From Diplonema japonicum (taxonomy: Eukaryota > Protista > Euglenozoa: Diplonemea), in contig OZ025740.1 of the NCBI GenBank assembly GCA_964019335.1, positions 1 through 64,000 of the forward strand: 64,000 bases of DNA, in the 5' to 3' direction. Within the stretch, counting starts at the first letter, position 1, and the number at the start of each line of letters is the position of its first letter. A program made the translations under genes and the position numbers. The notes under the pieces are model-generated. The model was given only the letters and a program-made list of their open reading frames with translations, was not told where the DNA came from and did no database searches. Below, in pieces: positions 1-16,814 of this stretch.

Positions 1-3000
1 GGGTGTTGCCCTCCGAGGAGGAGTCGGAGGCGTCCGACTGAGACGTCCCCTCCATGGGTTCCCCACCCTCTATCGAATCACTCTTCTCCTCCTCCTCCTC
101 CGCGGACATGTCGGTCGGGCCCACCTCCTCCGCAGGGGTGGAGGTGTATCCCAGCGACGTCCCTCCGCCCTGCCCATCCCCGCTCTCTTCCGTGTCCTCC
201 TCCATCAAGCCGGGCTCCTCCTCCTGAGGACTTCCCTCCCCCATGGACAAGTCGGCTGTTTCGTTTTCTTTAGAACCTGAGATGTCCACCCGCGGGGCAG
301 CGGGGCCTGCCTGCGGAACCCACCCTTCTGCGAGCGAGCTCCCTGCCGTATCCTCCTCCATCGCGTCGGGGCTGGAGATGTCTGGTAGCGGCACTGCCCC
401 CCAGGGCTCCCTCACCTCCGTCGCGTCAGGGGTTCCCCCCTCCCCCGCGGGGGCCAAGTCCGTCCCTCCGACGACCGGGGGGGCGGCGGGGATGTCCGCC
501 TGCGGAGCACCGCCCTCCAGCCCGTCCTCGCTTTCCACCTCCATCAAGCCGAAGTCCTCCCCCTGCAATGAGAGAGGGCCTGTCTGCAACGCCTGCTCCT
601 CTGGCATGTCCTCTGCCGGGTCCTCCTCCATCGCGCTGGGGCCATCCTGCGTCGTGCACACTTCCTCCTCTCCAGCGGGCATGTCGGCTGATTCGGTTTT
701 TGTCGTGCCTGACGCGTCCTCCGTCGAGGGTGGGGGGGCGCCCGCTGCCTGGGCTTCCTCGTCTCCTGGGCCATCGGGGGGGATGTCTGGGGCCGGGGGT
801 GGGTCGGGCGGTGCTTGTGTCTCTTTGATCGGGTGCCTCCTCCTCGTCTCCACTGCCACCTCTCTCATGAGGGCTACGCTCAGTTCCTCTGTCATGGTCC
901 TATAGACCTCCGTCGCGTCCCGCTGCCTCTTCTTCGCCACCTCCGCCGCGATCCTCTTCAGCACCCTCCTGGCGTCGGTCCCGAACCCGCCAAACGTCTC
1001 CAGAGCACAGGGGGTGAACCGTATCCGGGCTCTCTCGCAGTCGCTCGCGTACTTCGCCCGCTTCGACTCCGCCTGTTTCTCCGCAGCCGCCCCCGGAACC
1101 GCCATTGCCGCCGCCAGGTGGGCGCTCGCGCACGGGTGGACCACCGTCACGTCGATGGCCAGAGGGCCCTCGCCTTCCACCCCCATCGGGAGGTAAACGT
1201 CAGCAGGCTTTCTCCCGTCACCCAGGAGGCCTTGTTGCTCCTTCACCGCTTGCAACCCGCCGCTGTAGCAGTGCTTCACCAACATGTCCCTCACCCTGTC
1301 GTGCCTCTTCGTCATGACCGCACCTCTCTTGCAAACCATGGCATGGTCGCCTAGGGCGTCGTTGTCCTCACCGCACATCGGGCACTTCCCCTCGGACCCG
1401 ACTGCGGTGCCAAGGAGCCAGCTGGTCAGCGTCCTGAACTCATCGTTCTTTAGTTCGTTATTCAAGCCCGTGATCGCCGTCAGCCAAGCCCCTGCTTTGT
1501 GAACCTTCAGCGAGTTCAACCTGGCCTTGTCCCTACCACCCGGGGAGCTCCCGAACAGCGCACCCCAGGACTTCTCCTCGAGGATCTGCGACATCTTCCT
1601 CTGAGGGTACAGCCTCGGGGTGTTTCGCAGCAGGTCCACGGAGAGCCTGTCAGGATCGTCGGCTGCGAGGTGGCCGTTGAACCACTCGACCCCCCACTCC
1701 CAGCCACCCGCCAGTGAAGCGTCCCAGTCGTACCCCCCCAGGATCTCCGACGCCAGCTCCTGGGTCGCCGCCAGCGAGGCCATGTTCGCCACTAGGGCGT
1801 GTTCGCTGCAGCTGCGAAGGCCCATCCCTCCCCTCCTCGTCGCAAGCTTCGCCTGGCTCCACTCCCTCTCCCCGAGCTCCCGGGCAAGAAGGTGCTCCAT
1901 CGCCCCCTTCACCAGGCCGTCGAATTCCGTCAAGGGGCCCGCTAGCTGCGTGTGCGGTACCGTGCGCATGAGGTGGACCATCTTGCTGTACGAGCTGCAG
2001 TTCTTCACCAAGGCGTAGCCCGACTGGGTCCTCATCTTCTTCTGCATCTCGAAGGTCTTGCCCAGGGCCTCGAGCTTCTTTGCCAAGAAGGCCTTCGTGT
2101 ACTCCGCGTCCCCTATGGGGGTCCCCAGGAGCTCGAAGTTCCCATCCGAGCTCATTTTCTCCTTGGAGAAACCGGAGAAGCCCCACTCTTCTGGGTCGGT
2201 CGGCTTCTCACCAGACACCCAGATCAACTCGCACTTCTGCGGCTTCACCTTCAGGCCTCGCTTCGCCGACTCCTCTACCACGATGCGGTAGGCCTTCTCC
2301 ACCTGTCCCCTCTCTCCGGCCAGGAACCCGTCATCGAGGTAGAAGAACTGGAGGTCCAGACTTGTATCCGCCCTTATCTTCTCCAGTACTGGCTGCAGCG
2401 CGAGGGAGAACAGCAACGGACCCACCGGGTCGCCCTGCTGGACCCCCTCCCTCGAGAGTAGCTCCGTCCCCTCGTGGAACAGCTTGGATGGGTGTCTGTA
2501 GCAAGATTCGGCCCACTTGTACCCCTTGGGAACCTTCGCGCACGCCTCCTTTAGCATCTCGTACCTGCTGATTGTGTTGAAGGCGTTTGCGTAGTCTATC
2601 TTGATCGCCACTCGGGACACGTCGTCCTGTTTCGCCTTCTCCACGTACTGCCTTGTCGCGTGGACAGCCGCCTCCATCCCCGCGGGGACCGCCACCCCGA
2701 TCTGGCCCCCCTTCCTCAGGTAGGACTTGGCCACTTCCGCCCCTTCCTTGTCAAGGATTGCCTTCCCTACAAGTCGTCTCAGGCTCTCTCCTACGGCGAT
2801 CGGACGGACTCCCCTGTCCGGTTTCCGCAGCGGAATCAAGCTCGCCCCTAGTAGCACCGGTGCCACCTCAGCCGGAGTCTGACCTCTGGCCATGATATTG
2901 CACACCTCGGTGAGAGCCGCCAGGGCCCCTACTTCCGTCACCACGCCGTCCACCCCGTCCTTCAGGTGTTGGGCGCTCAACCCAGTCGGCCCAGCCGCTT

Positions 3001-6000
3001 TCCCCTTGTCAAAGTCCCGGACCATGCTCAGAACGTCGACGGCCGTGACGTCCTCGAAGGAGTCAGCCGGATTCAGTTCTAGCCCCGAGGGGTCAACCGA
3101 TGCCTCAGGGTGGAGGCCCAGGAGCTTCTCGAAGGTCTCGGTGGAGTCCTCCGCCAACCCTCCCGCAGTTAGCGCTGCGTTGGCTCTGGAGAAGCGCCCA
3201 TCCCTGCACAGCGTCTCCCCTCTCTTCAGCCTGGATTCGTCGTCTGGATCCTTCGAGACTCTCTTCTCCGATAGGGGGACTCCGTTCCACACCTGCTGGT
3301 ACTCCCCTCTGATCCAGGCCTCCAACTTCTGCTTGGCGCTGCTCTCCCCGGACTTCCGACGTGCCTTTCCACCCCTGCGTCTGCCCAGGCAAGCCTTCGG
3401 AAGCATCAGGAGCAGCACCCACGACAGGTAGGAGTTCTCCTGCTTCACCCTCACCAGTGCCGTCTTCAGCGCCAGACTCCACAGCCCTTGGAGCGGGACG
3501 GGGATGTGCTTCATGAGGCCCACTTTCCGGGTGGCCACCTCCTCCAGAGAAGGAAGTGCGTCCCGGCTAGGGGCCGCCTTCACATCCACGGGACCCCCAG
3601 GAGCGCTGTACCTGGCGATGCACCTGACGTGAGCCGCCTCCCGTTCGCCCACCACCGACCCACACACGCAGGTCTTGAGGCCAAACTTCTTCAGCTCCTG
3701 CGGGAGTACCTCCTCGTCCAGCAGGTGGTCGTTCAAGTGGGACTTCAGCAGTTCCCACCCCAAGATCGCCGGGCCTCCCATGTGGGACGACCTCTCGCAC
3801 CCCCTCACCGGGCACTGGAAACTCCTGACCTTGCTGTCCAGTCGTGGGGCATCCTTCATGTGGTGTCCGTTGGGCCTGATGGAGGACTCCGGCATCAGGA
3901 GGTGGGCGAGGTCCAGGATGGCGGGCCTGGTCCCCGAGGGGGCTAGCCTCGCCTCCACCGCCCAATCCACCAGGGTGGACTTTCCGCCCTCCGAGACCAA
4001 CACAGGCCTGTAGTGGGATCCCGTGAAGCCAAGCACCACCGTATCCTCCGGTTCCCTTGCCTCCCCGAGCTTCAAGACCTGGGCGTCACCCCCGGTCACG
4101 ACCACGACCGTCTTTTGCCAGACCTCCACCGCCGCCTGCAGACAAAGGTGGTCCCCCCACTCCCCTTGCTTTGCCATGTAGTGGATGTAGGCCTCAAAAC
4201 CGATCGGATCCACAAAGCTCTCGAACCTGCCCCTGTTGTCCCTTATGTGGTTGACCACCCGACTCCTCACCTCTCCGTGTCGTTCCTTCTCCCCCAGCAG
4301 CACCACAGCCAGAGAGCGGAACAAGCAATCCCCTCCGCCCCCAGCATCCTCCTCCTTGGCACCCACCTCGTGCAGGATCGACTCCCTGGTGACAGACGAG
4401 CCCGATATCCCACGGACGAGGCGGGAGGGCTCCTTCTCGGGCTTGGGCCGGCAATTCACGCACCGCTCCTTGTTCCCCGCCGTGAACAGCACGCTGCACC
4501 CTCCGCAGATCGCGAAACCCATCGCCTTCGCGTTCTCTGGCGTGAGCTCTCCGGCGTGGGTCTTCGACAGGTGGTACTGCAAGCCCGCCTTCGACGAGTG
4601 CTCTTTCTTACCCTTCTCACACAGCAGGCACTCCCACACTCCGTCGGTCCTTCGGGAAGCCCCGGCCGTGCTCCTACTGGTGGCGGGGGGGCCTCCGGCT
4701 GCGCCTGGGGGCGGAGGCGGGGGTGGGGGTTGGGAAAGCGTTGCTCCGCCTTTGAGCGAGGAGGCTTCTAAGGGGAGGGGGGGCACGGGGCTCCGATAGA
4801 CCACCCTGGTATAGGGCCCCCAACGTCTCCTGGCCACCCACCTCTTCCTCGCAAGGTGTTTCCCGGCCCTCGACCTGATGGCCCTCCTGGCCATCGCAGC
4901 CCTCTCCTCCGCTTCCGCTATCCCGATGAGCCGGGCTGCAACAGCTGGAGGGGCGGGACCGCACCCCTTCTTCTTGCAGGCTTCCCTTTCCCTCCTCTTC
5001 TCGACCCTTCTCTGGCGGTGCAGCCTCCTCCGCTCCCTGTCAGCGATTTCCCTAGCCTTCTCCCTGGCCTGGGCCCTCTCCTCGCGGCGCCTTTGGAGGG
5101 TGGCCTCGCTACGGTGTCTCCTCCTCCGGCCCTTCGTCACCGTCTGCCTCGTCTTCCGGGGTCCCGGGGCCAACCAGGGTACTCCCCCTCCATTCCTCCC
5201 CTGCGGGGCGCGCTCCGGCTTCCATCTTTCCTCCTGGGCCACCGCCCCCACCACCCCCTGGAGGGTGGTGGAAACGGGGGCCAGGACCCCCCTCCTGTTA
5301 GTGAGTGTGGGTGTGTTTTTTTGTTTATTTTCCACCCTCAAAAAAAGTCCCGGACCCATTCGGATCCGGGTGTAAAGGGGGGGTGACAATGGGGGGGCCG
5401 AAGGGGCGCTAACCTCTCTAGGGAGAGCACCCTTCTCTTTTTTCTTCTTATCCTCCTTCTGGGAGGAAACAAAGGGGGGGGAATCCGCTTGGGGGGGGTT
5501 TGCAAGGGGGGGATTTACAAGAGGGGGGACAGATAAACCATAAATAGAAGAAGCAGAGGAAGGGGCGCTACCCTCTCTCGGGAGTGCACCCTTCCCTTTT
5601 TTTTTTTTCTTATCCTCCTCCTGGGAGGGAACAAAGGGGGGGGGATCTACAAGGGGGGGGTTTACAAGGGGGGAATTTACAAGAGGGGGGACAGATAAAC
5701 AAGAGAAAGAAGAAAAAGAAGAAGCGGAGGAAGGGGGGGAGTTTACAAGAGGGGAGACAGATAATCCAGAGATAGAAGAAGCAGAGGAAGGGGCGCTACC
5801 CTCTCTCGGGAGTGCACCCTTACCTATTTTTTTCTTGTCCTCCCCCTGGGAAGAAACAAAGGGGGGGGAATCTACAATGGGGGGGTTTACAAGGGGGGAA
5901 TTTACAAGAGGGGGGACAGATAAACAAGAGAAAGAAGAACAAGAAGAAGCGGAGGAAGGGGGGGAAGGGGCGCCTCCCTCTCTCGGGGACACCTCCTTCG

Positions 6001-6874
6001 CACTCTCTTTCCTTCTCCCCACAAACACAGTATTTTTTTTTTCTATTTCCTCCACAGAGGACACAGAGGGGGAGGGGAGGGGCACGGGGCAGCCAACCGT
6101 CCGCAGGGTGATCGACACCCTGGAGCCCGAAGAACACCCTTCGGGGATGTGGTGGGTCCATTCGTAGCGGGCCTCACCCTCCAGAATGGCCCAGGTGAAG
6201 GGAGGCACCAGGTACTTCGATACCCTGGACCCCTTCTTCAGGACCATCGTGGTCTCTGCGCCGTACGAGAGGATGAGGACCACTGGTCCCAACCTCACGT
6301 CGTCGGTGTGGTGGGCGATTCCACACCCAGGCTCGTATCGATTTACGAGCACCTGGTCTGGGGTGATCCCCAGCCCCGCTGCGGTGGCCACCTCCGCCAC
6401 CCAACCCCTGGCCCCCTCTGGGATCGGGGTGGTGCGGCGCACTTTGGCACGGGCAACCACCCACCTGAAACCAAATTGGAGGGTTTCCCTCCCTTTGTTC
6501 CCCGAAATGGACTCCCACCCCCCCGAGAGCAAGGTCTCTGGGTGGGTGGGAGCTGGGCCTGTTCTTAAGCCCGGGGGGTGGTCCCCTCCCGTGAGCACCC
6601 ACCCTCCTTCTTTCTTTTTTTCCCCCCTCTCAGTCTTCAGGCGGGTGGCGGTGGCGGCTGCGGAATCGGGAGCGGGCGCGCTGGCTGCGGGTGGTTCTAT
6701 TTTTTTATGTTTTTTATTATTTTTTACGACATCTAGAGGGGATCTAAGGGGAGGGGAGGGGTCATACTGCCCGGCCAGATTTCGGTCTGGTCGGGTGGTC
6801 GGCTTGGTCGGCGTCTCTCGTAGGCGTTCCTCCTGCGGGCGGCGGTCTCCGACGACGTTTCGTCTAGGGTCCAT
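1..6874 (-). CDS. Retrotransposon polyprotein (>2290 aa, runs off the window): AlkB (~6100-6600), repeat linker, C2H2 ZnF (~4550-4640), OTU (~4005-4345), ZnF, RT (~1800-3050), CCHC + RLE (~950-1400), low-complexity C-terminal tail
   Basis: Manual translation from 6874: MDPRRNVVGD...QVLVNRYEPGCGIAHHTDD...WTHHIP...RVSITLR; GDCLFRSLA...WGDHLCLQAA...GSHY; FFYLDDG (~2325-2346); RHDRVRD, PADVY, AIDVTVVHP, KRAKY, ALETFGGFG. The ORF is absent from the track, consistent with no in-frame stop before the window edge, and all antisense shadow ORFs share one frame. Confidence 0.88.
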   Translation of the reverse strand, partial: MDPRRNVVGDRRPQEERLRETPTKPTTRPDRNLAGQYDPSPPLRSPLDVVKNNKKHKKIEPPAASAPAPDSAAATATRLKTERGEKKKEGGWVLTGGDHPPGLRTGPAPTHPETLLSGGWESISGNKGRETLQFGFRWVVARAKVRRTTPIPEGARGWVAEVATAAGLGITPDQVLVNRYEPGCGIAHHTDDVRLGPVVLILSYGAETTMVLKKGSRVSKYLVPPFTWAILEGEARYEWTHHIPEGCSSGSRVSITLRTVGCPVPLPSPSVSSVEEIEKKNTVFVGRRKESAKEVSPREGGAPSPPSSASSCSSFSCLSVPPLVNSPLVNPPIVDSPPFVSSQGEDKKKIGKGALPREGSAPSSASSISGLSVSPLVNSPPSSASSFSSFSCLSVPPLVNSPLVNPPLVDPPPFVPSQEEDKKKKKGKGALPREGSAPSSASSIYGLSVPPLVNPPLANPPQADSPPFVSSQKEDKKKKEKGALPREVSAPSAPPLSPPLYTRIRMGPGLFLRVENKQKNTPTLTNRRGVLAPVSTTLQGVVGAVAQEERWKPERAPQGRNGGGVPWLAPGPRKTRQTVTKGRRRRHRSEATLQRRREERAQAREKAREIADRERRRLHRQRRVEKRREREACKKKGCGPAPPAVAARLIGIAEAEERAAMARRAIRSRAGKHLARKRWVARRRWGPYTRVVYRSPVPPLPLEASSLKGGATLSQPPPPPPPPGAAGGPPATSRSTAGASRRTDGVWECLLCEKGKKEHSSKAGLQYHLSKTHAGELTPENAKAMGFAICGGCSVLFTAGNKERCVNCRPKPEKEPSRLVRGISGSSVTRESILHEVGAKEEDAGGGGDCLFRSLAVVLLGEKERHGEVRSRVVNHIRDNRGRFESFVDPIGFEAYIHYMAKQGEWGDHLCLQAAVEVWQKTVVVVTGGDAQVLKLGEAREPEDTVVLGFTGSHYRPVLVSEGGKSTLVDWAVEARLAPSGTRPAILDLAHLLMPESSIRPNGHHMKDAPRLDSKVRSFQCPVRGCERSSHMGGPAILGWELLKSHLNDHLLDEEVLPQELKKFGLKTCVCGSVVGEREAAHVRCIARYSAPGGPVDVKAAPSRDALPSLEEVATRKVGLMKHIPVPLQGLWSLALKTALVRVKQENSYLSWVLLLMLPKACLGRRRGGKARRKSGESSAKQKLEAWIRGEYQQVWNGVPLSEKRVSKDPDDESRLKRGETLCRDGRFSRANAALTAGGLAEDSTETFEKLLGLHPEASVDPSGLELNPADSFEDVTAVDVLSMVRDFDKGKAAGPTGLSAQHLKDGVDGVVTEVGALAALTEVCNIMARGQTPAEVAPVLLGASLIPLRKPDRGVRPIAVGESLRRLVGKAILDKEGAEVAKSYLRKGGQIGVAVPAGMEAAVHATRQYVEKAKQDDVSRVAIKIDYANAFNTISRYEMLKEACAKVPKGYKWAESCYRHPSKLFHEGTELLSREGVQQGDPVGPLLFSLALQPVLEKIRADTSLDLQFFYLDDGFLAGERGQVEKAYRIVVEESAKRGLKVKPQKCELIWVSGEKPTDPEEWGFSGFSKEKMSSDGNFELLGTPIGDAEYTKAFLAKKLEALGKTFEMQKKMRTQSGYALVKNCSSYSKMVHLMRTVPHTQLAGPLTEFDGLVKGAMEHLLARELGEREWSQAKLATRRGGMGLRSCSEHALVANMASLAATQELASEILGGYDWDASLAGGWEWGVEWFNGHLAADDPDRLSVDLLRNTPRLYPQRKMSQILEEKSWGALFGSSPGGRDKARLNSLKVHKAGAWLTAITGLNNELKNDEFRTLTSWLLGTAVGSEGKCPMCGEDNDALGDHAMVCKRGAVMTKRHDRVRDMLVKHCYSGGLQAVKEQQGLLGDGRKPADVYLPMGVEGEGPLAIDVTVVHPCASAHLAAAMAVPGAAAEKQAESKRAKYASDCERARIRFTPCALETFGGFGTDARRVLKRIAAEVAKKRQRDATEVYRTMTEELSVALMREVAVETRRRHPIKETQAPPDPPPAPDIPPDGPGDEEAQAAGAPPPSTEDASGTTKTESADMPAGEEEVCTTQDGPSAMEEDPAEDMPEEQALQTGPLSLQGEDFGLMEVESEDGLEGGAPQADIPAAPPVVGGTDLAPAGEGGTPDATEVREPWGAVPLPDISSPDAMEEDTAGSSLAEGWVPQAGPAAPRVDISGSKENETADLSMGEGSPQEEEPGLMEEDTEESGDGQGGGTSLGYTSTPAEEVGPTDMSAEEEEEKSDSIEGGEPMEGTSQSDASDSSSEGNT
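5400..6060. repeat. Imperfect in-frame tandem repeats (3-4 units, ~150-230 bp) in the linker after AlkB
   Basis: Recurrent GAAGGGGCGCTACCCTCTCTCGGGAGTGCACCC and TTTACAAGAGGGGGGACAGATAAAC blocks. Confidence 0.8.
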
Positions 6875-7013
6875 TTTTATTTTTTTTTTTTTGTGTTGAG
6901 GGGGGAGGGGATCCTTTGCTAAACGGCAGGCGGGCCGGGCCGAAACAACCCCCCCAGACGACGACGAACGGACACCGAGCGGACGCAGCAGGCACCACAA
7001 AAACACAGACGAC

Positions 7014-7052
7014 CAATAAAGTACAGAAACTGTAGCTTTAGAATCGTTGGTT
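7014..7052 (-). other. Genomic copy of the 39-nt spliced-leader exon AACCAACGATTCTAAAGCTACAGTTTCTGTACTTTATTG
   Basis: 39 nt ending in the conserved euglenozoan SL 3' half CAGTTTCTGTACTTTATTG; the AACCAACGAT start resembles diplonemid SLs. Confidence 0.93.
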
Positions 7053-7057
7053 TTTTT

Positions 7058-7128
7058 AAAAAGGGGGACTTGAGAAAATAAATAAAAAGGGGGACTTGAG
7101 AAAATAAATAAAAAGGGGGACTTGAGAA
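7058..7128. repeat. 26-bp tandem repeat (~2.7 copies) abutting the 5' end of copy A
   Basis: AAAAAGGGGGACTTGAGAAAATAAAT at 7058, 7084 and partially at 7110. Confidence 0.85.
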
Positions 7129-7820
7129 TGTTTTTTTTTTTTTTTTTTCTTCAAAAGACACACAAGGCACGATAAATCTTAAGAGAAAATAAAAATATTC
7201 CAAAACAGACAATCAAGTTCCAACCTGCGAGGAAGGCATGGGTTTCTCTTTTTCTTTATGGGAGGGAGAGGGGAAGAAGAAGAAGCAACTCCAAATGATA
7301 AAAATTCAAAAATAAAAATCTCAAAAAAGGCTTAAAAGAAGAAGAGGCAAATTCAAAAACATACTAGGGAGGAATGAGTGGGGCAGGGGGTAAAATTTAG
7401 GAGGGGGAAAGAGGGAGAATCAAAAAAGGGGAAAGGGGCAGAGTGACCAATGTCCATGCGAAAAAGCATAGAGCGGGGGAAGAAGAAAATCAAAAACAGG
7501 AAAAACACATCACCACAAAAGAAAAAAGAAAAAAAAAAAAAAACGTCGACCGAGATGGTTCCACTTCAAAAAGAAAAAGAAAAAGAAAAACAGAAAAATA
7601 AAAAAAAAAAAAAAAAAAAAAAAGGAAAAACAAAAAGAAAAAAAAAAAAAAAAGGAAAAAAAAAAAAAATCTAAGTGGTTCTATCTAGCCTGGCCGTTGT
7701 AGCACCTGTTCCCTATTCTTTTATTTTTCCCTTTTTTTTTTTCTCAGAAAAAAAAAAAAAAAAGTTTCACATCTTCCTATGGCGGGGGGGGGGAGAACAG
7801 CCCCCCACACCCCCGCTGGC

Positions 7821-10800
7821 CTATCTGGCCAGCGAGCCTTTGGACCTCTTCTTGTGGGGTATGGGCCCCACCCGTGCCCTCCCCGACTCGAGCTGCAGCC
7901 AAGCCACCGCACTGTTCACCGGGGCCCAGTTCTCCTTGTTGCGCACCTTGACCGTGTCCCGCACCAGGTCGTCGCTCCCCAGCTCTTCCATCAACCTGTG
8001 CTCCGCCAAGAACTTGAACTGGGGCCCGGTCATCCCCTTGAGCTCACCCCTGCATATGTTGGCTTCGACCACGGTGCCATCCGCCCCCGTACCCTTCAGA
8101 TAGATGTAGCCACCCTCCACACAATCCGAGTCAGTACTGGCCGATCGGGCCCGGGCCCGCTTCTTGTCCTTCTTGCTCCACTTCAGCTCTTCCAGGGTGG
8201 GGAGGTCCGTGGCAACCACCTCAGGCCGCCTCTCCCTGTCTTCCTCCTTCTTCCGGGCCAACAGCCCAAGGTACCTCTCAAAGGAGACGTCCTCGAACAA
8301 CCCCGGGACCGTCACCACCGCTGACTGCAGGTCGACCTCTTCAACACCCATCTTCCGCAGATGGTCCTGGACAGTGCGCCTCGTCTCCTTCTCGCAGGGC
8401 CCCCTCCCCTCGTAGACGTCGAGGGTGACCTTCCTTCCATCCCTCACCCACGCCTTCACTTTGATCAGGTCCTTGACCTTTCCCACTGGGGCCCTTATCC
8501 TTGCGTCGCACCTCTCCAAGAACTCACGTAGTGTCACCTTGGTAGCGCCGGCTCCCGCCGCAATGCCCACTACCCCTTCCTTCCCCGGTGTCGGGTGGTG
8601 TCTGCACCCCCGGGTCTGCAACTTGACCACCCTCCATGCCGTTTCCAGAGTCCCCTTGAGCACGCCACCCTTGAAACGAACAGGTTGCACCGCCGAACAC
8701 CCACACGCATACGTGATCTGGAAATCCTGGACCGTCCTCGGGAACTCGAACTCGCGGTATGTTTCCGACTTCTGCACCTCACAACCCACAATGCGGCTGC
8801 GGCGCTCTCCGTCCGACCCACCTTCCAAGCTTGCGAAGTACTGCTTTACCATCATGTATCCAAGTCCAGCGATACCAATCTGGCCAGCCATAGCCACCTC
8901 CAGTGGAACACCCAGCGACTCGGCCTTCGCAAGAAGCATCTCCTCAGTCCTCTCCCTTCCAGGGTCCGTTCCTTCTTCAAGGATGATCTCCACCCGGCCC
9001 TCGAACTGGATGATGAACTTGAGCAGTCGGTCCCCCGGCCTCGCCCTCAGTGGCACCATCGCTCTCGGAATTGGGATGCCCATCACCACATCAATCGGGT
9101 CAAGCTGAACGAAGTCTCCCCCTACTTCCACCTGCTGTTCCCTTTCCGGTGCCCCGACTCCCATCAGCTGATCTCCCTCCGGCGTCTGGATCCCACCCCT
9201 AGGTGTGTCAGGCCCCGACTGGCTGCCTCCGCTCGGTGCGTTCCCGCCCTCTTTGGTCCCTTCGGGGGCGTCATCCGCCTGCGGCTTCAGAGTCCTCCCA
9301 CCGCCCTGTCTCTTCGCAGCTTGTTCCCTACAGAATTCGCTCACGGTCATCTTCCTCGTAGCAGTTGTCGCACTCTGGTCCCCCTTGTTCGAGTCCCTCT
9401 GGGCCTCCGTATCCCCCTTAGGACACTGGTCCAAGGTCTGGTTCACCGCAGCGTCAGTCGCCCCTTGTCTCTTCCCATCTTCCTGGGCCTTCGGGTCAAG
9501 CTCCCCTCCCTGCCCAGCCCTCTCGCTGGATCCTGTTCCGACCATCTCCGTGTCTTCTCCTCCCGGCGAGGCTGCTTCGAGTCCTGCTCCCGCTTTCCCT
9601 TGTGTTCCACCCTCCACCGGTTCCGCCTTTCGCTGCTGCTGCATTCGGGCGTCCAGGTCCTTCTTCGTCTGCTCCAGAAGGGCATCCAGCTGGTGGGCCA
9701 CCGTGATTGGGGGTCCGCCTCCCTGTCCCTTCACTTCCCTCTCGGACGACTCCTCAGCTTCGGTGGTTTTTTCATTGCCGAAGGAGTCCTCTGTGAGGTC
9801 AGTGTTGGATTCAGTGTTGGGTTCGTTGTTCGCTTCCTCGTTGTCCTTTTTTTCCTCTTCGCCGTCCGGTACCGGGGGCCCTGGATCCAACTGTACAGGC
9901 CCTTTGACTAACAGCGCCCCTGCTATCGATCTCATCATGGCCGTTGACACCTCTTGGACCACACGCCTGTGTATCGAGACTCTGTCCCCGTGAGCCCGCG
10001 CAGCTATGCTCCTGGACAGTTTCTTCGTGAGGTAGACTGCTGCCTCCCCGAACCCCCCAAAGGTCTCCATCGCGAAAGGTACAAAGGCCACGCGTGTCTT
10101 GGCGAGCTCCGCCTCATACTTCTGGCGCTTGTAGTGTTCCGCCTTCGCCGCTGCGTATCCCGCAGTCTTCGCCGCCTGGTTGACACAAGACTCGTTCCTC
10201 GGGTGCACGATGACCACGTCCATAGCCATTGGGCGGGAACCCCCCACCCCACCTGGGAAGAACACGTCCGCCGGGCGCTGGGACGACCCCGGGATCAGCC
10301 CCGTCTTCTCCATCGTTGCGCTCACCCCGGCCCACTGACAGTGTCTGTGGATGGTCTCCTTCACCCGGTCGTGCCTCGCAATCCTGGCGTTGCCGCATCC
10401 CTGGGCATGGTCACCCCATACGTCCATCCCCTCAGTCTTGCACCTCGGGTCGTGGCAGCTCTCACCCTGCTTGTAGACCGGAGCCCCCAACCACCACTTG
10501 ATCAGAGCCCCAAACTCGTTGTCCGACAGCTGGTTGTAGAAGTCAGGCGTCGCCGTCAACCACGCTCCCGCATAGTGCATTGACTCCGACATCAACCTCG
10601 CTCTCGAGCGTGCATCTGCTTTCGCCAAGAGGTCCTCCAGCGCCTTCTCATCAAGCACCCTAGAGAGCCACCTCTGGCTGCAGATGTGGGGGGCCTTGGC
10701 CACCATGTCGGGTGTAATCTGCATGCCGCCCTTCGTCCTGTTGAACCACTCGAGCCAGCTCCCCCATACACCCCCTTCCAGCCCATGTTCGTATTTGGGA

Positions 10801-12410
10801 TCCAGCTCCTTGCACAGCTTCATCGTCGACGCCCTCGAAGCCATGTTGGCCGCGCGCAGGTGCTCCTGGCAGCTCCTCATCCCAAGCCCACCGACTTTTA
10901 CGGACAGTTTCGCCTGCTGCCATTCTTTCGACCCGTTCTCGAACTGCATGCCGCACACCTTCGACATCGTCTTCCGCACCATCTCGTCGAACCTGTGCAT
11001 GACCCCTCCCACATGCGAGTCTGGGACCACTCTCATGTAAAACACCAGTTTGCTGTATGAGCTGCAATACCGGAGAAGTGTGTACCCTGTCTGCCTCCCC
11101 ACCTTGGTCAGCATGTCGAAGTTCTCTTCCAGCGCGTCCAAGCGTTTGTTCAGAAAGGTTTGCGTGTACTCCGGCGATCCTATCGGCGCCCCCAGGAGCA
11201 TGAAGTTCCTCTCTTTGTGGAAATTCTCTTCTGTCAGGCCATCGAAGCCTGTGTCCTCCACTGTCTGGGGGAGGTCGCCACTAACCCATATGAGCTCGCA
11301 CTTCTGGGGTTTCACTTTCAGCCCTATCATTCCGCTCAGCTCACACAAGATGTTGTACGCCTTTCTCACTTCATCCACATTCCCCACAAGGACGCCATCG
11401 TCCAGGTAGAACTGGAGGATGTCCAGGTTGCAGTCTTCACTTATCTTGTTCACCAGGGGTTGGATGGCCAGAGAGAACAGCAGCGGTCCCATCGGGTCCC
11501 CCTGTTGCACCCCTTCCTGGGACTTAATCACCTTTCCGTTGTAGTATAATTGGGAGGGCACCCTGTAGCACCAATCGGCCCACGCATACAGCCCCGACGC
11601 TTGCTCATAGGCCTGTGAGCACAGCTGCCTCCGACAAACACTGTTGAAGGCGTTGGCGTAGTCGATCTTGAGGATCACCTTGTTTTCCTGCTTGTTGCCC
11701 CGTTCCCTGTCCACATACTGCCTGATGGTGTGTATAGCCGCCTCCATTCCAGCAGGGACCGATACCCCCACCTGGCCGCCTTTCTTCAGGTACGAAGAGG
11801 CCACTTCCGGAGCGATCTTCTTCACAAGGGATTTCCCCACCAGCCGACGCAGCACATCCCCAACGGCTATGGGCCGCACGTCCCTGTCGTTCTTCTTGAG
11901 GGCCACAAGGTTCGCCCCTGCCATCAGCGGAGCCACCTCCCTAGGGGCCGTGCCTCTAGCTAATGCGTTGACTGCCCTCGTCACCGACATCAAACAGCCT
12001 TGAGACTCAAAAGCTCCGTCCACCGCGTCCTTGATGTGCTGGGCTCTCAGACCAGTCGGTCCCGCAGCAGTCCCCCTCGGGAAGTCCCTGATTGCGTCCA
12101 GCACTTCTTCTGGCAAGACTTCTACCGCTTCCTTCGTCTTCGCCGGGTTGTCCCATTGGGGGTGTAGTGGCTCTGGATGTTTGCTCTGCAGCGCTCTCCA
12201 GCAATCCTCATTGTCTTCCGCCAGCCCCTGGGCTACAAGCGCCGCGTTTCCTGCCGAGAACCTCCCTTTGCTGCACAGTTCCGTGGCCCTGGCGACCTTA
12301 GAGACCTCGTCGTTCTTAGGTTCCCCCTTCTCACCTGATTCCAGCTTATTCCAGAGGGCCATGTAATTTCCCTTCTCCCACTCCTCCAATCTGGCATCTG
12401 GCCTGGACAC
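7821..12410 (-). CDS. C-terminal half of the copy B polyprotein: RT, CCHC, RLE and a ~690-aa extension; removing a 7-bp duplication joins it to the upstream half (~2802 aa total)
   Basis: RPIAVGDVLRRLVGK, KIDYANAFNSV, GVQQGDPMGPLLF, FYLDDG; CHDPRC..HAQGC, RHDRVK, RPADV, MDVVIVHP, KRQKYE, PFAMETFGGFG. ATCTGGC is duplicated at 12389-12402. Confidence 0.92.
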   Translation of the reverse strand: MSRPDARLEEWEKGNYMALWNKLESGEKGEPKNDEVSKVARATELCSKGRFSAGNAALVAQGLAEDNEDCWRALQSKHPEPLHPQWDNPAKTKEAVEVLPEEVLDAIRDFPRGTAAGPTGLRAQHIKDAVDGAFESQGCLMSVTRAVNALARGTAPREVAPLMAGANLVALKKNDRDVRPIAVGDVLRRLVGKSLVKKIAPEVASSYLKKGGQVGVSVPAGMEAAIHTIRQYVDRERGNKQENKVILKIDYANAFNSVCRRQLCSQAYEQASGLYAWADWCYRVPSQLYYNGKVIKSQEGVQQGDPMGPLLFSLAIQPLVNKISEDCNLDILQFYLDDGVLVGNVDEVRKAYNILCELSGMIGLKVKPQKCELIWVSGDLPQTVEDTGFDGLTEENFHKERNFMLLGAPIGSPEYTQTFLNKRLDALEENFDMLTKVGRQTGYTLLRYCSSYSKLVFYMRVVPDSHVGGVMHRFDEMVRKTMSKVCGMQFENGSKEWQQAKLSVKVGGLGMRSCQEHLRAANMASRASTMKLCKELDPKYEHGLEGGVWGSWLEWFNRTKGGMQITPDMVAKAPHICSQRWLSRVLDEKALEDLLAKADARSRARLMSESMHYAGAWLTATPDFYNQLSDNEFGALIKWWLGAPVYKQGESCHDPRCKTEGMDVWGDHAQGCGNARIARHDRVKETIHRHCQWAGVSATMEKTGLIPGSSQRPADVFFPGGVGGSRPMAMDVVIVHPRNESCVNQAAKTAGYAAAKAEHYKRQKYEAELAKTRVAFVPFAMETFGGFGEAAVYLTKKLSRSIAARAHGDRVSIHRRVVQEVSTAMMRSIAGALLVKGPVQLDPGPPVPDGEEEKKDNEEANNEPNTESNTDLTEDSFGNEKTTEAEESSEREVKGQGGGPPITVAHQLDALLEQTKKDLDARMQQQRKAEPVEGGTQGKAGAGLEAASPGGEDTEMVGTGSSERAGQGGELDPKAQEDGKRQGATDAAVNQTLDQCPKGDTEAQRDSNKGDQSATTATRKMTVSEFCREQAAKRQGGGRTLKPQADDAPEGTKEGGNAPSGGSQSGPDTPRGGIQTPEGDQLMGVGAPEREQQVEVGGDFVQLDPIDVVMGIPIPRAMVPLRARPGDRLLKFIIQFEGRVEIILEEGTDPGRERTEEMLLAKAESLGVPLEVAMAGQIGIAGLGYMMVKQYFASLEGGSDGERRSRIVGCEVQKSETYREFEFPRTVQDFQITYACGCSAVQPVRFKGGVLKGTLETAWRVVKLQTRGCRHHPTPGKEGVVGIAAGAGATKVTLREFLERCDARIRAPVGKVKDLIKVKAWVRDGRKVTLDVYEGRGPCEKETRRTVQDHLRKMGVEEVDLQSAVVTVPGLFEDVSFERYLGLLARKKEEDRERRPEVVATDLPTLEELKWSKKDKKRARARSASTDSDCVEGGYIYLKGTGADGTVVEANICRGELKGMTGPQFKFLAEHRLMEELGSDDLVRDTVKVRNKENWAPVNSAVAWLQLESGRARVGPIPHKKRSKGSLAR

Positions 12411-15400
12411 TCAGCTCCGTCTCCTTGTCCCGCTTCTTCCCTCCCCTCTTCTTCCACAGGCAGGCTTTGGGGAGCATCGCCACCAGCAGCCAAGCCTCCT
12501 CTGTGTTGTCCTTCACCGCTCGGCCCAGAGTGTGCTTAAGGGTAAGCCCCCACAGTCTTTGAAGGCTCGTCGGGATCGACCCCATGGTCGTGACGTTCAT
12601 GGCGGCTATGGTTTCCAGGCTGGGTAACTCGGTCCTCGTCGGGGCCGGCGGGGGGGTCGTGTATTCCCCTTCCCTTCGCACCGCCTTTTTGCACTCGTCG
12701 TGGCACCCCTGACCCTTCCACACACAGCCCCTGCACACCAGGCACCTCTCGAGGTCCAGTCTCCTCAGAACGCTCTCCGGGATCTCATCACTCTCCAGGT
12801 GCCCATCCAGGTGACACTTCCATACCCTTGTCGAGTTGAACGGGGTCGTGCTTTTGCACTTCGACCTAGCGCAGTTCGCCACCGGACAGTACAGGAATTG
12901 CTGGTTCCTTGCCCCCATCTGGTCCAACACCCCTGCCTTCCCGTATCCAGGGATCGCACGGTCTATTATGTCCCACTCCCCGATGTCCTCACCCGGGGCC
13001 TCGGAGGGTTGCTTACCTGCCTTTTGTAGAGCTACCGATTGGGACTCATCAAGGAGCATCATCATCGACTCCTCCTCTCCGACTGCATACTCGTAGTGGT
13101 TGCCGTTGTACGCCAGCACCACCACCTTCTCGTGGTCGGAGTTGTACTCCCCTATCATCAGGACTGGGTTGTTCCCCCCAGCAACCACGAGTATCGTGCG
13201 GCCAAACGCTTGTGCTGCGGCTGCCAGGCACAAGTGGTCTCCCCACGTCGCTGCTGTGCCCATCCCTTCCAAGTACCGGTCCCAACCCTCACTGCAAAAC
13301 GGGGCATAGTGCTCCTCCCGGTGTTTCATCCATTCTACAACCTCGCTCCTGATGTGGGTGTGGTCGCCGTAGGCTTCCCCGAGCGAACCGGCCAGGGCGT
13401 GGAACATGCAGTTCCCGTCCTTCTCCGTCGATCTCCTCGTCAGCTTGAAGCTCTTCATGATCTCGTCCACTGACTTGCCGGCCCTGGGTTGTTTGTCGGG
13501 GTTCCACAGATTCCGCTGCCTGTGTAGTGCACAGTGCGTCTGGTTCGACGAGCACGCCGCAGCACACGTTCCACAGAGGTTCACCTTCATGCTCCTCGCC
13601 TGCTCTTGTTTCACAAAATGATGGTGGACCGCATTGAGGTGTTTAACTAGACAGCTTGCCACACTGGTGCGGAAAGAGCAGTCTTCCATCCGGCATTGAT
13701 GTTTGTCTGATCCTTCTTTTTCCCCCTCCTTCTGCGCCTCCATGTGCTCATCATCCAAATCCATGGGGGGAGGGTCACCACCTCCTTGCAACGCGTCCCC
13801 TGCCAGCGTCAAGTCCGCAAAGGGGTCCAGTTGTTCGGCCTGAAAGAGCTTATCCTCCGTCTCGGCTCGTTCCTTCGCCGCTTGCTTGGCGTCTTCCTTC
13901 TTTTTTCTGCGTCTTGAGCTTCTAGGCGGGCCCAAGTACACCGGCAGGTAGTGACCTCTCGATCCGCGTCTTGTCTTCCTCAGCTTTACCGGTCCGAATC
14001 TCTGGGTCGGGTCAGCACCAGCTTTCCACACCATCACTTCCGACATGGCCCAGAGCGACATCAGCCCCCCTATCCAAACTGAAGTGCTTCCCACCAGAGT
14101 GCCCCCTACTGCTAGCCAAGCGAGCTCCCCGGCGGACCATTCATCCCCTCGGGGCCCCACCTGTACCCTTGACCTGCGGGTGGTCCTCCTGTCGCTCCCC
14201 GGCCTCTTCCACAACACTGCCGCATGCAGGAAGGAGGGGGCCATCCCGATGCCCGCCCCCAGCACCTGCCTCACCCCTGGGATCAGCAAGAGGGAGACCA
14301 GGGCGACCCAGGCCCACACCCCCAGGTGCTCCCATCTCACCCCTTCCTTGCTGTGTCCCGTCCGTCTGCGGTGCCTCCTTGTGCCGGTTGCAGCCCCAGG
14401 TGCCGGGATTCTGGGTGCCAGGGGTTGGGCTCCAGGCGTTCCCACCTCGGTCCGCTTCAGCCCCATTGCAGGGTCATCTGGCTTCTGTTCCAGGGCGGCC
14501 TCGTGTTCCTCTCTGCGGGCCCTCCTCCTCCCTTCTTTCCTCGCACGACGGTGCCTTTTCTTCTCCTGTCTGGCAGCCTCCCTCGCCCCCTCCCTCGCCT
14601 TGGTCCTCTTCTCCCGACGCCTCTGAAGGGCCGTTTCGCTCCTGTGCCTCCTCCTGTTCTTCTTCCGCTTGGGCGCTGGCTTAGGTTCCCTGCCACCCAT
14701 GGCAATCCAGGGGGCTCTTTTCTGTCTTCTCACAAGGGTGTGCAGTGGTGCTCTCACGTCGCTCGCAGCCTCCGCCCCAACCACACCTAGGCGGGCGGTG
14801 GGGGTGGGTGCTGGGTCCCCCTGGTTGTTTGAAAAGAAAAAAGGTTCCTCCTTGTTTGTTTTTTTTTTTTCTTTCCCTTCCACCCTCAAAAAAAGCCCCC
14901 GGCCCTTGGGGACCAGGGTGTACACCTCCGTAGAGGGTCCAGAAAAAATGGGGGGCAGAGAGGGAGGGGCACTACCTTCTCTCGGGCGTGCTGTCTCTCC
15001 CTCTGCCTTTTTTTCCTCCGAAGAGGGTCTGTTTTTTACCTCCGTGGAGGGTTCCTCTGGAGAGGGCTCTAAAAATGAAAAAGGGGGGGACAAATGGGGG
15101 GGAGGAGCACCACCCTCTCTCGGGAGTGCCACCTCTTCCCCTTTCTCTCTATTTTCCTCCGAAGAGGGTCTGTTTTCCTCCGAAGAGGGTTCTAAAAAAA
15201 AAGGGGGGGCGGGTGGGGCACTATCCTCTCTTGGGAGTGCCACCCCCCCTTGCCCACAAAAAAGGGGATCTAAAAAAGGGGGTTCGTCTGTTAACCCAGG
15301 GGATGGGTCTTCCTGGGGTGTGCGGGTGAGCTTGGGGCCTACCGCACGCAGGGTGATCGACACCCTGACACCAGTGGACATCCCGGACGGGATGTGGTGC

Positions 15401-16236
15401 GTCCACTGGTGTCTCGCTTCACCTTCCAACAATGCCCATGAGAAGGGGGGCACCAGGTATTTCGCCACCCTGTCCCCCCTCCTCATGACCATTGTGGTCT
15501 CGGCTCCGTACGAGAGGACTAGGACAATCGGTCCCAGCCTCGCGTCGTCCTTGTGGGCGGCAATCCCACAACCAGACTTGTACTTGTTGACAAGTACCTG
15601 GTTGGGGACCACCTCGAGCCCTGCGGCGGCGGCCACCTCCCTCACCCACCCCTCCGCCCCCCCTGGGATCCCCGTGGTGGGGCGCACCTTGGCGTTCGTC
15701 CCCTCCCACCGGTACCCGTATTGGAGGGTCTCCCTCCCTGAGTTCCCAGACAGGGCCTCCCACTTTCCTGAAAGCAGGGCTTTCGGGAAGGCAGGGGCCG
15801 GGCCCGTCCTCAACCCGGGAGGGTGTTCACCATACACCAGTACCCACCCCTTTTTTTCTCCCTCTTTTCTTCCCTCTTCAACAATAGCAGGGTCGGCTGC
15901 AGGGGTCGTGGTCGCGGCGGTCGTGGCTGCGGCAGGGGCGGCTGCGGCGGTCTCAGTTGCGGCGATCAGGGCGGCAGGGTCGGCTGCGGCGTTCAGGGTG
16001 GCTGGGGCGGCCGTGGTTGTAGCAGCGGCGGTCAAAACCGCGGTCTCTGCTAGTGATTTTTTTATTTTATTATTTTTTTTTTCTAAAGGGGGGTGGGGGG
16101 ATCTAGGGGGTGGGGATTCATACTGCCCAACCAGATTGCCTGGTTGGGTGGGTCTCGGCGCGTGCTGCGGGCTGCGGGCTTGCTCCTGCGGGCTGTGGCT
16201 GCGGTCACCTCCTCCTGCGAGTCGTCTTGGATCCAT
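12346..16236 (-). CDS. N-terminal half of the copy B polyprotein: AlkB, hydrophobic segments, C2H2 ZnF, OTU protease, second ZnF
   Basis: VLVNKY..GIAAHKDD..WTHHIP..RVSITLR (AlkB); CRMEDC..HLNAVH; DGNCMFHALA..WGDHLCLAAAA..YNGNHY (OTU); CPVANC..HLDGH. Confidence 0.88.
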   Translation of the reverse strand: MDPRRLAGGGDRSHSPQEQARSPQHAPRPTQPGNLVGQYESPPPRSPHPPLEKKNNKIKKSLAETAVLTAAATTTAAPATLNAAADPAALIAATETAAAAPAAATTAATTTPAADPAIVEEGRKEGEKKGWVLVYGEHPPGLRTGPAPAFPKALLSGKWEALSGNSGRETLQYGYRWEGTNAKVRPTTGIPGGAEGWVREVAAAAGLEVVPNQVLVNKYKSGCGIAAHKDDARLGPIVLVLSYGAETTMVMRRGDRVAKYLVPPFSWALLEGEARHQWTHHIPSGMSTGVRVSITLRAVGPKLTRTPQEDPSPGLTDEPPFLDPLFCGQGGVALPREDSAPPAPPFFLEPSSEENRPSSEENREKGEEVALPREGGAPPPHLSPPFSFLEPSPEEPSTEVKNRPSSEEKKAEGETARPREGSAPPSLPPIFSGPSTEVYTLVPKGRGLFLRVEGKEKKKTNKEEPFFFSNNQGDPAPTPTARLGVVGAEAASDVRAPLHTLVRRQKRAPWIAMGGREPKPAPKRKKNRRRHRSETALQRRREKRTKAREGAREAARQEKKRHRRARKEGRRRARREEHEAALEQKPDDPAMGLKRTEVGTPGAQPLAPRIPAPGAATGTRRHRRRTGHSKEGVRWEHLGVWAWVALVSLLLIPGVRQVLGAGIGMAPSFLHAAVLWKRPGSDRRTTRRSRVQVGPRGDEWSAGELAWLAVGGTLVGSTSVWIGGLMSLWAMSEVMVWKAGADPTQRFGPVKLRKTRRGSRGHYLPVYLGPPRSSRRRKKKEDAKQAAKERAETEDKLFQAEQLDPFADLTLAGDALQGGGDPPPMDLDDEHMEAQKEGEKEGSDKHQCRMEDCSFRTSVASCLVKHLNAVHHHFVKQEQARSMKVNLCGTCAAACSSNQTHCALHRQRNLWNPDKQPRAGKSVDEIMKSFKLTRRSTEKDGNCMFHALAGSLGEAYGDHTHIRSEVVEWMKHREEHYAPFCSEGWDRYLEGMGTAATWGDHLCLAAAAQAFGRTILVVAGGNNPVLMIGEYNSDHEKVVVLAYNGNHYEYAVGEEESMMMLLDESQSVALQKAGKQPSEAPGEDIGEWDIIDRAIPGYGKAGVLDQMGARNQQFLYCPVANCARSKCKSTTPFNSTRVWKCHLDGHLESDEIPESVLRRLDLERCLVCRGCVWKGQGCHDECKKAVRREGEYTTPPPAPTRTELPSLETIAAMNVTTMGSIPTSLQRLWGLTLKHTLGRAVKDNTEEAWLLVAMLPKACLWKKRGGKKRDKETELSVQARCQIGGVGEGKLHGPLE

Positions 16237-16306
16237 TTTTTTTTTTTTTTTGTTTTATAGTGTGTGATGGGGGGGAGGGGATCCTTTCGTTGAGCGGCGG
16301 GCAGGC

Positions 16307-16343
16307 CAATAAAGTACAGAAACTGTAGCTTTAGAATCGTTGG
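16307..16343 (-). other. Spliced-leader exon copy (nt 3-39) at the 5' end of copy B
   Basis: CCAACGATTCTAAAGCTACAGTTTCTGTACTTTATTG, identical to SL nt 3-39 at 7050-7014. Confidence 0.92.
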
Positions 16344-16350
16344 CGGGTTT

Positions 16351-16814
16351 GCCCACCGACTTTTACGGACAGTTTCGCCTGCTGCCATTCTTTCGACCCG
16401 TTCTCGAACTGCATGCCGCACACCTTCGACATCGTCTTCCGCACCATCTCGTCGAACCTGTGCATGACCCCTCCCACATGCGAGTCTGGGACCACTCTCA
16501 TGTAAAACACCAGTTTGCTGTATGAGCTGCAATACCGGAGAAGTGTGTACCCTGTCTGCCTCCCCACCTTGGTCAGCATGTCGAAGTTCTCTTCCAGCGC
16601 GTCCAAGCGTTTGTTCAGAAAGGCTTGCGTGTACTCCGGCGATCCTATCGGCGCCCCCAGGAGCATGAAGTTCCTCTCTTTGTGGAAATTCTCTTCTGTC
16701 AGGCCATCGAAGCCTGTGTCCTCCACTGTCTGGGGGAGGTCGCCACTAACCCATATGAGCTCGCACTTCTGGGGTTTCACTTTCGGCCCTATCGTTCCGC
16801 TCAGCTCACACAAG
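16351..16814 (-). repeat. 464-bp duplicate of copy B's internal RT region (10886-11349), located immediately upstream of the SL
   Basis: Direct comparison shows near identity, with about 3 substitutions seen. Confidence 0.93.

Follow-up and report, generated by a model that had tools for sequence, protein, structure and literature searches.

A probable chromosome-end array of spliced-leader-headed retrotransposons encoding AlkB and OTU domains in Diplonema japonicum

Organization of the element array

The window analyzed here, the first 64,000 nucleotides (nt) of contig OZ025740.1 (contig C93 below) in the Diplonema japonicum assembly GCA_964019335.1 (62.5 Mb, 132 contigs), opens with a stack of retrotransposons lacking long terminal repeats (non-LTR), whose polyprotein combines an AlkB-type dioxygenase domain and an OTU-type protease domain with a reverse transcriptase (RT) and a restriction-like endonuclease (RLE). 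Positions 1-16895 form a chromosome-end stack of three nested or stacked copies, arranged head to tail and read on the minus strand: copy A, copy B and fragment C. Along that strand, going outward from unique DNA, there follow in turn a 14-nt remnant of the chromosome-terminal repeat, a short piece ending in poly(A), fragment C, a 10-nt repeat remnant, copy B and copy A (Table 1). This interval is probably the inner part of a chromosome-end array of a telomere-targeted, CRE/SLACS-like element of the RLE type that carries AlkB and OTU.

The full element is 9.3-10.7 kb long and consists of a spliced leader (SL) head, a 5' untranslated region (UTR), a single open reading frame (ORF) of 2800-2990 amino acids (aa), a 3'UTR and poly(A). 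The ORF encodes, in order, AlkB, a low-complexity and basic linker, a C2H2-like finger, OTU, a further finger, RT, a CCHC motif with a PD-(D/E)XK endonuclease, and a variable tail. Copy A is open for 2291 codons, from 6874 down to the contig start (2-6874), and is 100% identical over 7054 nt to a family-A element on contig C24 with an ORF of 2990 aa. The frame of copy B is broken by a 7-bp insertion that is missing both from an otherwise 99% identical copy on contig C9, the identity spanning from just past the N-terminus to the tail, and from read-derived contigs of three public DNA runs (X1, X2 and X4; gap placed at 12389). A preliminary description, made from the letters of this DNA, had put a frameshift at 12389-12395, which equals this copy-specific insertion at 12396-12402, and its figure of about 2800 aa for the mended frame agrees with the intact natural family-B ORFs of 2804 (C9), 2802 (C31) and 2804 aa (C16).

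Table 1. Coordinates of the array features in the window
Feature	Position	Strand	Remarks
Copy A (family A), SL head to contig start	1-7050	-	Ends at contig edge inside C-terminal tail
Copy A restriction-like endonuclease, CCHC + RHD..E..KPAD..D	1151-1384	-	Fits SLACS/CRE REL consensus (PMC12857005)
Copy A reverse transcriptase RVT_1	2195-2827	-	Pfam 68.6 bits; FYLDD at 2330-2344
Copy A OTU	4007-4339	-	Pfam 42.6 bits; GGDC...HY
Copy A low-complexity linker, 162/225-nt tandem repeats	5400-5965	-	
Copy A AlkB (2OG-FeII_Oxy_2)	6101-6487	-	Pfam 38.1 bits; HTD...H...RVSITLR
Copy A 5'UTR, long form starting GTCGTC	6875-7013	-	
Copy A SL head, CC + 35-mer (35-mer 7014-7048)	7014-7050	-	Directly abuts copy B poly(A)
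Copy B 3'UTR, about 760 nt, T-rich, with 7-nt poly(A) at 7051-7057	7051-7820	-	
Copy B ORF piece 2: pre-RT, RT, RLE, C-terminal region of unknown fold	7824-12410	-	
Copy B restriction-like endonuclease	10218-10457	-	Motif pattern
Copy B reverse transcriptase	11286-11897	-	Pfam 61.6 bits; nearest solved structures R2 proteins
Copy B ORF piece 1: N-terminus, AlkB, linker, zinc finger, OTU, zinc finger	12349-16236	-	
Copy-B-specific 7-bp insertion, breaks frame	12396-12402	-	Alignment to C9 copy; lacking in run contigs
Copy B OTU	13090-13419	-	Pfam 47.6 bits; best PDB matches OTUD5, OTUD3
Copy B AlkB	15346-15747	-	Pfam 51.9 bits; best PDB sequence match ALKBH8
Copy B 70-nt short 5'UTR + SL head (16307-16343; 35-mer 16307-16341, preceded by CC)	16237-16343	-	
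Terminal-repeat remnant (GCAAACCCGC) between fragment C and copy B	16343-16352	-	Same 8-mer as contig-end arrays
Fragment C: doubly truncated piece of a family-B RT, with repeat remnant as cap	~16351-16860	-	100% identical to C9 element positions 5067-5530
Innermost terminal-repeat remnant (AAACCCGCAAACCC) bordering unique DNA	16882-16895	-	1 match vs 0.05 expected

Domains and motifs of the polyprotein

Matches to the Pfam profiles 2OG-FeII_Oxy_2, OTU and RVT_1 all exceed the gathering cut-offs in copies A and B, so the AlkB, OTU and RT domains named in the preliminary description are recovered in both. Its observation that the catalytic residues are retained also held for all four catalytic domains. 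The AlkB motif HxD...H...RxSxTxR and the RT motif FYLDD (RVT_1 60-69 bits) are preserved in the two copies; the catalytic Cys and His of OTU are preserved in families A and B, in a third family (C18), in Diplonema papillatum and in D. ambulator; and the endonuclease pattern C..C..H..C..RHD..E..(R/K)PAD..D is found in families A, B and C18, with spacers differing slightly from the restriction-like endonuclease signature quoted for SLACS, CRE and MoTeR (PMC12857005). The domain order given earlier proved real, but the two zinc fingers on either side of OTU can be recognised only by their C2H2-like spacing, with no Pfam call around OTU in copies A and B. The solved proteins nearest to the RT are R2 proteins (E 7e-8). 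The lack of LTRs, the 3' poly(A), the 5'-truncated fragments and the variable 5' joins are those of an RLE-type non-LTR element.

In a 30-sequence alignment of AlkB, residues H131, D133, H183, R194, S196 and T198 are invariant. The structural model of the copy B domain (predicted local distance difference test, pLDDT, 87) has its nearest folds in ALKBH6, ALKBH8, NMAD-1 and Ofd2, followed by ALKBH2, ALKBH3 and ALKBH5. By sequence matches to PDB entries, OTU is closest to the cellular proteins OTUD5 and OTUD3.

The linker between AlkB and OTU (14400-14900 in copy B, 5400-5965 in copy A) is rich in proline and serine and contains tandem repeats of 54-75 aa followed by an arginine-rich basic stretch; its length differs between copies, resembling the variable-number tandem repeats reported at the 5' end of FoTeR. 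The C-terminal 475 aa of family B, past the endonuclease (7824-9250), gave no match in Pfam or in the Atlas, and a single-sequence AlphaFold model of this region reached pLDDT 36. Family A instead ends in an acidic low-complexity tail.

Conservation across families and species

Three families in the genome (A, B and C18) retain every catalytic motif, as do the GenBank models of D. papillatum. Between families A and B, AlkB is 71% identical at the amino acid level, with a ratio of nonsynonymous to synonymous substitution rates (dN/dS) of 0.25 and a dS of 0.89; RT is 52% identical (dN/dS 0.28), and OTU is 33% identical, with a dN/dS of 0.62 at saturated dS. The lower dS at the 5' end, together with a family-A-like 5' end on the B-bodied copy of contig C9, shows that 5' modules have been exchanged between families. 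In that copy (9590-9950 of its left-end stretch, compared with 16050-16343 of the window), a family-A-like 5'UTR and about the first 60 codons are carried on a family-B body, an arrangement that indicates inter-family recombination or template switching.

Among 1.84 billion representatives searched exhaustively with HMMER, only one other source that combines AlkB with OTU emerged, namely D. papillatum; this search replaced a word-indexed comparison of the AlkB-to-OTU stretch with long proteins, which had found no match, probably owing to low-complexity words. The D. papillatum model KAJ9442719.1 (2635 aa, annotated as "SLACS 132 kDa protein, partial") contains AlkB, OTU and RVT_1 and is 34% identical from OTU to the endonuclease, while two models with the annotation of ALKBH8-like tRNA methyltransferases, KAJ9446222.1 and KAJ9439924.1, are pieces of the D. 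papillatum element by virtue of a shared 90% cluster or an identical core motif. Furthermore, transcriptome fragments from D. ambulator match the OTU region at 48% identity. In an RT tree made by a quick method and containing no CRE, R2, R4, NeSL or Hero references, the three families and the D. papillatum element form a clade (Shimodaira-Hasegawa-like approximate likelihood ratio test, SH-aLRT, 96), and the sister clade consists of ENA sequences, some of which bear OTU.

The architecture is thus conserved in three families and in D. papillatum and is not a one-off fusion, as had been proposed from the window. The accompanying suggestion that the combination was undescribed stands in part: a literature search found no paper on AlkB, or on AlkB with OTU, in a non-LTR element, but the architecture was already in GenBank, mislabelled. 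In the D. papillatum genome paper, SLACS-type RTs are listed apart from "a dozen AlkB-type genes", which that paper interprets as host demethylases.

Chromosome-end location and terminal repeat

Genome-wide, the AlkB domain of copy B gave at least 120 matches. Nearly all of these are minus-strand matches no more than about 40 kb from a contig start or, for contigs of known length, plus-strand matches no more than about 11 kb from a contig end. The 3' end of the element points outward to the chromosome end. This specificity for chromosome ends is a feature that the preliminary description had missed. At contig starts the repeat tract is (GGGTTTGC)n and at contig ends it is (GCAAACCC)n, with 5568 matching 32-mers; examples of such tracts are 1-618 on C9 and 1-430 and 1-384 at two further contig ends. 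No TTAGGG arrays were found genome-wide, and the literature search found no paper on this 8-mer terminal repeat. Among 16 left ends examined, 10 begin with a repeat tract and 9 have element coding sequence within 10 kb. At the left end of C2 (1-2886 of the 1-10000 stretch), the tract extends for about 2.9 kb, compared with 150-700 bp at other ends.

Intact terminal copies have a T-rich 3'UTR of about 720 nt that ends in poly(A), and this poly(A) abuts the CCCGCAAA repeat directly on C9 and C6, while a short filler intervenes on C31 and C30. In arrays (the window, C33 and C24, the last being a tandem array with a period of 10.66 kb), poly(A) adjoins the SL of the next element. Poly(A) tails range from 2 to 62 nt. 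Copies truncated at their 3' side are capped directly by repeat at the end of C10, on C20 and in fragment C of the window, and an independent sequencing run contains a 5'-truncated copy joined to repeat. All four interstitial copies inspected (C20, C30, C89 and C64) lie beside interstitial repeat arrays. Copies are thus found at terminal repeats in one fixed orientation, the behavior of telomere-targeted retrotransposons of the MoTeR/FoTeR and TRAS/SART type. Compared from one chromosome end to another, copies show 99-100% identity.

At the terminus it is the C-rich strand that carries the 3' end, opposite to the arrangement in canonical telomeres, and on this strand repeat has been added de novo to truncated elements. 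Loss of telomerase was considered as the cause of these odd ends and rejected for now, a TERT-like ORF being present at C41:533974. In the middle of the 620-kb contig C30 (4647-5109 of the 330000-339999 stretch), (GCAAACCC)n and (GGGTTTGC)n stand head to head between oppositely oriented elements, which may reflect either an ancient fusion of two chromosome ends or a join made in scaffolding.

The spliced-leader head

On C15 and C59, SL RNA genes stand in tandem as unbroken units of about 350 bp, each reading AACC, a 35-mer and GTACCC, and the exon of these genes is the same 35-mer that heads the elements. The genes were recognised by their tandem structure and exon|GT boundary; Rfam gave no SL RNA family match on these candidates. 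Because the units are uninterrupted, the elements are not inserted in SL genes, and the insertion inside the SL RNA gene exon that marks the CRE clade is not seen. Of the "CRE-like" assignment made in the preliminary description, what survives is that the RT and endonuclease are of the RLE type and that the nearest named relatives are labelled SLACS. A place in the CRE clade proper is at most tentative, its only support being the SLACS label given by NCBI to the D. papillatum relatives.

The join between SL and 5'UTR takes several forms. In the commonest, long form, SL is followed by GTCGTC...; in four shorter forms, a complete SL meets different UTR positions, once after AAAG and three times after CG; and in three copies a complete SL is followed by the last 16 nt of SL and then by the long UTR. 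This 16-nt relic fits re-splicing at an AG inside an SL copy, and the template would therefore have been a spliced RNA that bears SL. The varying join to the 5'UTR and the relic together indicate that the SL head derives from a spliced RNA template. Because SL followed by GT recreates a donor site, cis-splicing from an SL copy may provide an alternative route to the short forms. Most retrocopies begin ACC-AACG.

The genome contains 194 exact SL 35-mers, and several other dispersed repeat families also start with a complete SL, for example SL+GTGGTGGGGATAACATGG and SL+GTGTCCGACCGTGCCAATAAAG. SL-headed retrocopies are therefore a general feature of this genome.

Alternative explanations

It is extremely improbable that AlkB is a separate host gene, a one-off fusion or an assembly join beside a retrotransposon. 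Such an origin would accord with the ALKBH8-like methyltransferase annotation of the AlkB-only models in D. papillatum and with the count of "a dozen AlkB homologs" as host demethylases in that genome paper. However, AlkB follows the SL head and precedes OTU within a single uninterrupted ORF in no fewer than four intact copies from different contigs, and the 2635-aa D. papillatum model agrees; the core motif string of the AlkB-only model is identical to that of the polyprotein; host-type AlkB loci of the D. japonicum genome are only 27-36% identical to the element AlkB; and copies that consist of the 5' part only are expected from erosion of chromosome ends. The view that AlkB and OTU were captured as a module from a Betaflexiviridae-like RNA virus, and are thus homologous rather than convergent, is also very unlikely. 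Both systems place AlkB upstream of OTU in a polymerase polyprotein, and RNA-virus polyproteins are among the structural matches. The element domains, however, lie about 640 residues apart, with the linker and a zinc finger between them, and the best AlkB folds are those of cellular ALKBH6 and ALKBH8 and of giant-virus oxygenases. Among the viral library entries, the AlkB model matches giant-virus oxygenases and picorna-like polyproteins best; flexivirus replicases follow only at about rank 20 and below, at 13-17% identity. The nearest AlkB sequences are short metagenomic AlkB proteins (35-39% identity), and the best OTU matches are, as noted above, cellular.

The array might instead be a dead subtelomeric repeat that was spread by recombination or segmental duplication, with AlkB and OTU as decaying relics, in line with the near identity of copies between ends, the tandem array of C24 and the short open frames of many copies. 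This is distinctly unlikely in view of the differing 5' flanks, SL-UTR joins and poly(A) lengths, the truncated copies at independent sites, several intact ORFs of 2800-2990 aa, and the retention of catalytic residues across genera and across families whose RTs are only 52% identical, along with the low dN/dS of AlkB. There is a minor but appreciable chance that the SL head is not spliced on in each cycle and instead descends from an ancestral insertion into an SL RNA gene, of the kind known for SLACS, CZAR and CRE, or is produced by transcription of the DNA copy. SL precedes every long-form 5'UTR in the genome; a search for a master copy, in which the long 5'UTR would be preceded by a splice acceptor instead of SL, yielded chance matches only; and SL followed by GT recreates the donor site of the SL RNA. 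On the other hand, the elements lie outside SL RNA genes; in three copies a full SL is followed by a 16-nt SL relic beginning immediately downstream of the AG within SL, and in four others a complete SL is joined to different UTR positions. Such joins require that the spliced RNA had an SL copy in it beforehand.

Proposed life cycle and accessory functions

A telomere-targeted retrotransposon with AlkB and OTU is the favored explanation for the array. Judging by the structure of its copies, the element evidently has a polyadenylated RNA with an SL head as its template, and its copies are inserted at the terminal repeat in a single orientation. In the proposed cycle, the array would be transcribed toward the chromosome end, and the transcript would be processed by SL splicing and polyadenylation. 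The endonuclease would then nick the G-rich strand of the 8-mer terminal repeat after TTT, a putative cleavage deduced from the poly(A)|CCCGCAAA junctions, and the nicked end would pair with poly(A), priming reverse transcription up to about SL nucleotide 2. Joining at the 5' end might proceed by microhomology between the SL start AACC and the AAACCC repeat, often straight to the tail of the previous element, which would give rise to head-to-tail arrays. Later erosion from the chromosome end would trim elements from their 3' side, and new repeats would be added.

AlkB may act as an Fe/2-oxoglutarate dioxygenase on RNA, most likely on the template of the element itself, stripping base methylation that marks the RNA for host control or blocks RT. 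Viral AlkB repairs 1-methyladenosine (m1A) and 3-methylcytidine (m3C). The proposal that AlkB acts on the element's own RNA draws on this viral repair and on the AlkB of an orchid Gypsy element (PMC9289625). OTU could serve as a deubiquitinase (for ubiquitin-like modifiers), as a self-processing protease of the polyprotein, or as both; removal of modifiers or cutting of the polyprotein has been suggested for OTU and Ulp1 in other transposons (PMC2836005, PMC4640811).

Several points weigh against this account. The roles of AlkB and OTU are putative, including those put forward in the preliminary description (an RNA repair or modification eraser and an anti-ubiquitin counter-defence), and a single transcript from AlkB to the endonuclease is predicted from genomic DNA. 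The dN/dS of OTU is weak evidence because only in the 5' region is dS unsaturated. Of the four shorter SL junctions, three follow CG and not AG, and regeneration of the commonest long form is unexplained by the model, as is the strand polarity of the terminal repeat, which is opposite to that of canonical telomeres. Finally, because copies at different ends are nearly identical, part of the spread could reflect subtelomeric recombination and not new insertion.

A bolder proposal, which we regard as rather unlikely, would unite the SL head, AlkB and the odd chromosome ends in one system. By analogy with the cap-4 of kinetoplastids, which carries N6,N6-dimethyladenosine (m6,6A) and 3-methyluridine (m3U), the first nucleotides of SL in the copied mRNA may bear base methylations that stop RT. 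AlkB would strip these, so that complementary DNA could reach the AACC start, which would supply the microhomology to AAACCC. With an 8-mer whose 3'-ending strand is C-rich, the arrays would then be non-canonical chromosome ends built partly by retroelements.

Implications

These findings add a nucleic-acid dioxygenase and a deubiquitinase-type protease to the short list of accessory enzymes in non-LTR elements, in a host group of early-branching and ecologically dominant protists. The element provides a natural system in which to ask whether RNA base methylation restrains retrotransposition outside plants and animals, and it offers an example of a retrotransposon that propagates via an SL-spliced mRNA. 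A published reading is also corrected, in that at least some of the "dozen AlkB-type genes" of D. papillatum are retrotransposon domains and not host demethylases. Furthermore, the chromosome-end arrays and the inverted repeat polarity point to an unusual telomere biology.

Comparison with known systems

The individual traits of the element have precedents: an LTR element carries AlkB, Ginger and Helitron DNA transposons carry OTU, NeSL/Utopia carry Ulp1, and CRE-like elements of fungi target telomeres. The closest counterparts are the D. papillatum models KAJ9442719.1, KAJ9464152.1 and KAJ9446222.1, which share the AlkB-OTU-RT(-RLE) polyprotein but are partial and are named either "SLACS 132 kDa protein" or "tRNA (carboxymethyluridine(34)-5-O)-methyltransferase", the architecture being undiscussed in the genome paper.

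With SLACS, CZAR, CRE1 and CRE2 of trypanosomatids, the element shares a single ORF, N-terminal C2H2-like fingers, RT, a C-terminal CCHC motif with a PD-(D/E)XK endonuclease, poly(A) and a euglenozoan host. In contrast to them, it lies outside SL RNA genes, carries a nearly complete SL as its own 5' end and targets the terminal repeat, and its ORF, which includes AlkB and OTU, is 2.5 times longer. NeSL and Utopia-1_TSP (PMC4640811) are likewise RLE elements whose N-terminal part includes a cysteine protease of the ubiquitin-like-modifier hydrolase type, and NeSL is linked to spliced-leader genes; their protease, however, is Ulp1 (C48) and not OTU, they are without AlkB, and they target SL1 or U2 genes.

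Replicases of Betaflexiviridae and Closteroviridae also carry AlkB upstream of an OTU-type protease in a polymerase polyprotein, but they are RNA replicases and not RTs, and their two domains are adjacent, compared with the wide separation found here. No specific relatedness of the element AlkB and OTU to the Betaflexiviridae domains was found. Because the AlkB folds and OTU matches are chiefly cellular and flexivirus replicases rank so low, the link to these viruses drawn in the preliminary description reduces to an analogy.

MoTeR1 and FoTeR of Magnaporthe and Fusarium (PMC12857005) resemble the element in having an RLE-type RT, an exclusively telomeric location, a fixed orientation and arrays, and also in a sense strand colinear with the C-rich repeat strand, 5' regions rich in tandem repeats and the same REL motif. 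They differ in their size (about 1150-1184 aa) and are without AlkB, OTU and SL. Because repeat polarity at the chromosome end is opposite in the two systems, the 5' end of MoTeR1 and FoTeR points toward the terminus, whereas the 3' end does so here.

The Ty3/Gypsy element of Phalaenopsis is likewise a retrotransposon with an AlkB-type 2-oxoglutarate dioxygenase, and this AlkB has N6-methyladenosine (m6A) demethylase activity in vitro (PMC9289625). That element is of the LTR type, and its AlkB is a separate extra ORF recently gained from plant ALKBH9/10-like genes. In contrast, the AlkB of the Diplonema element is ALKBH6/8-like, forms the N-terminal domain of a non-LTR polyprotein and is old, being common to two genera.

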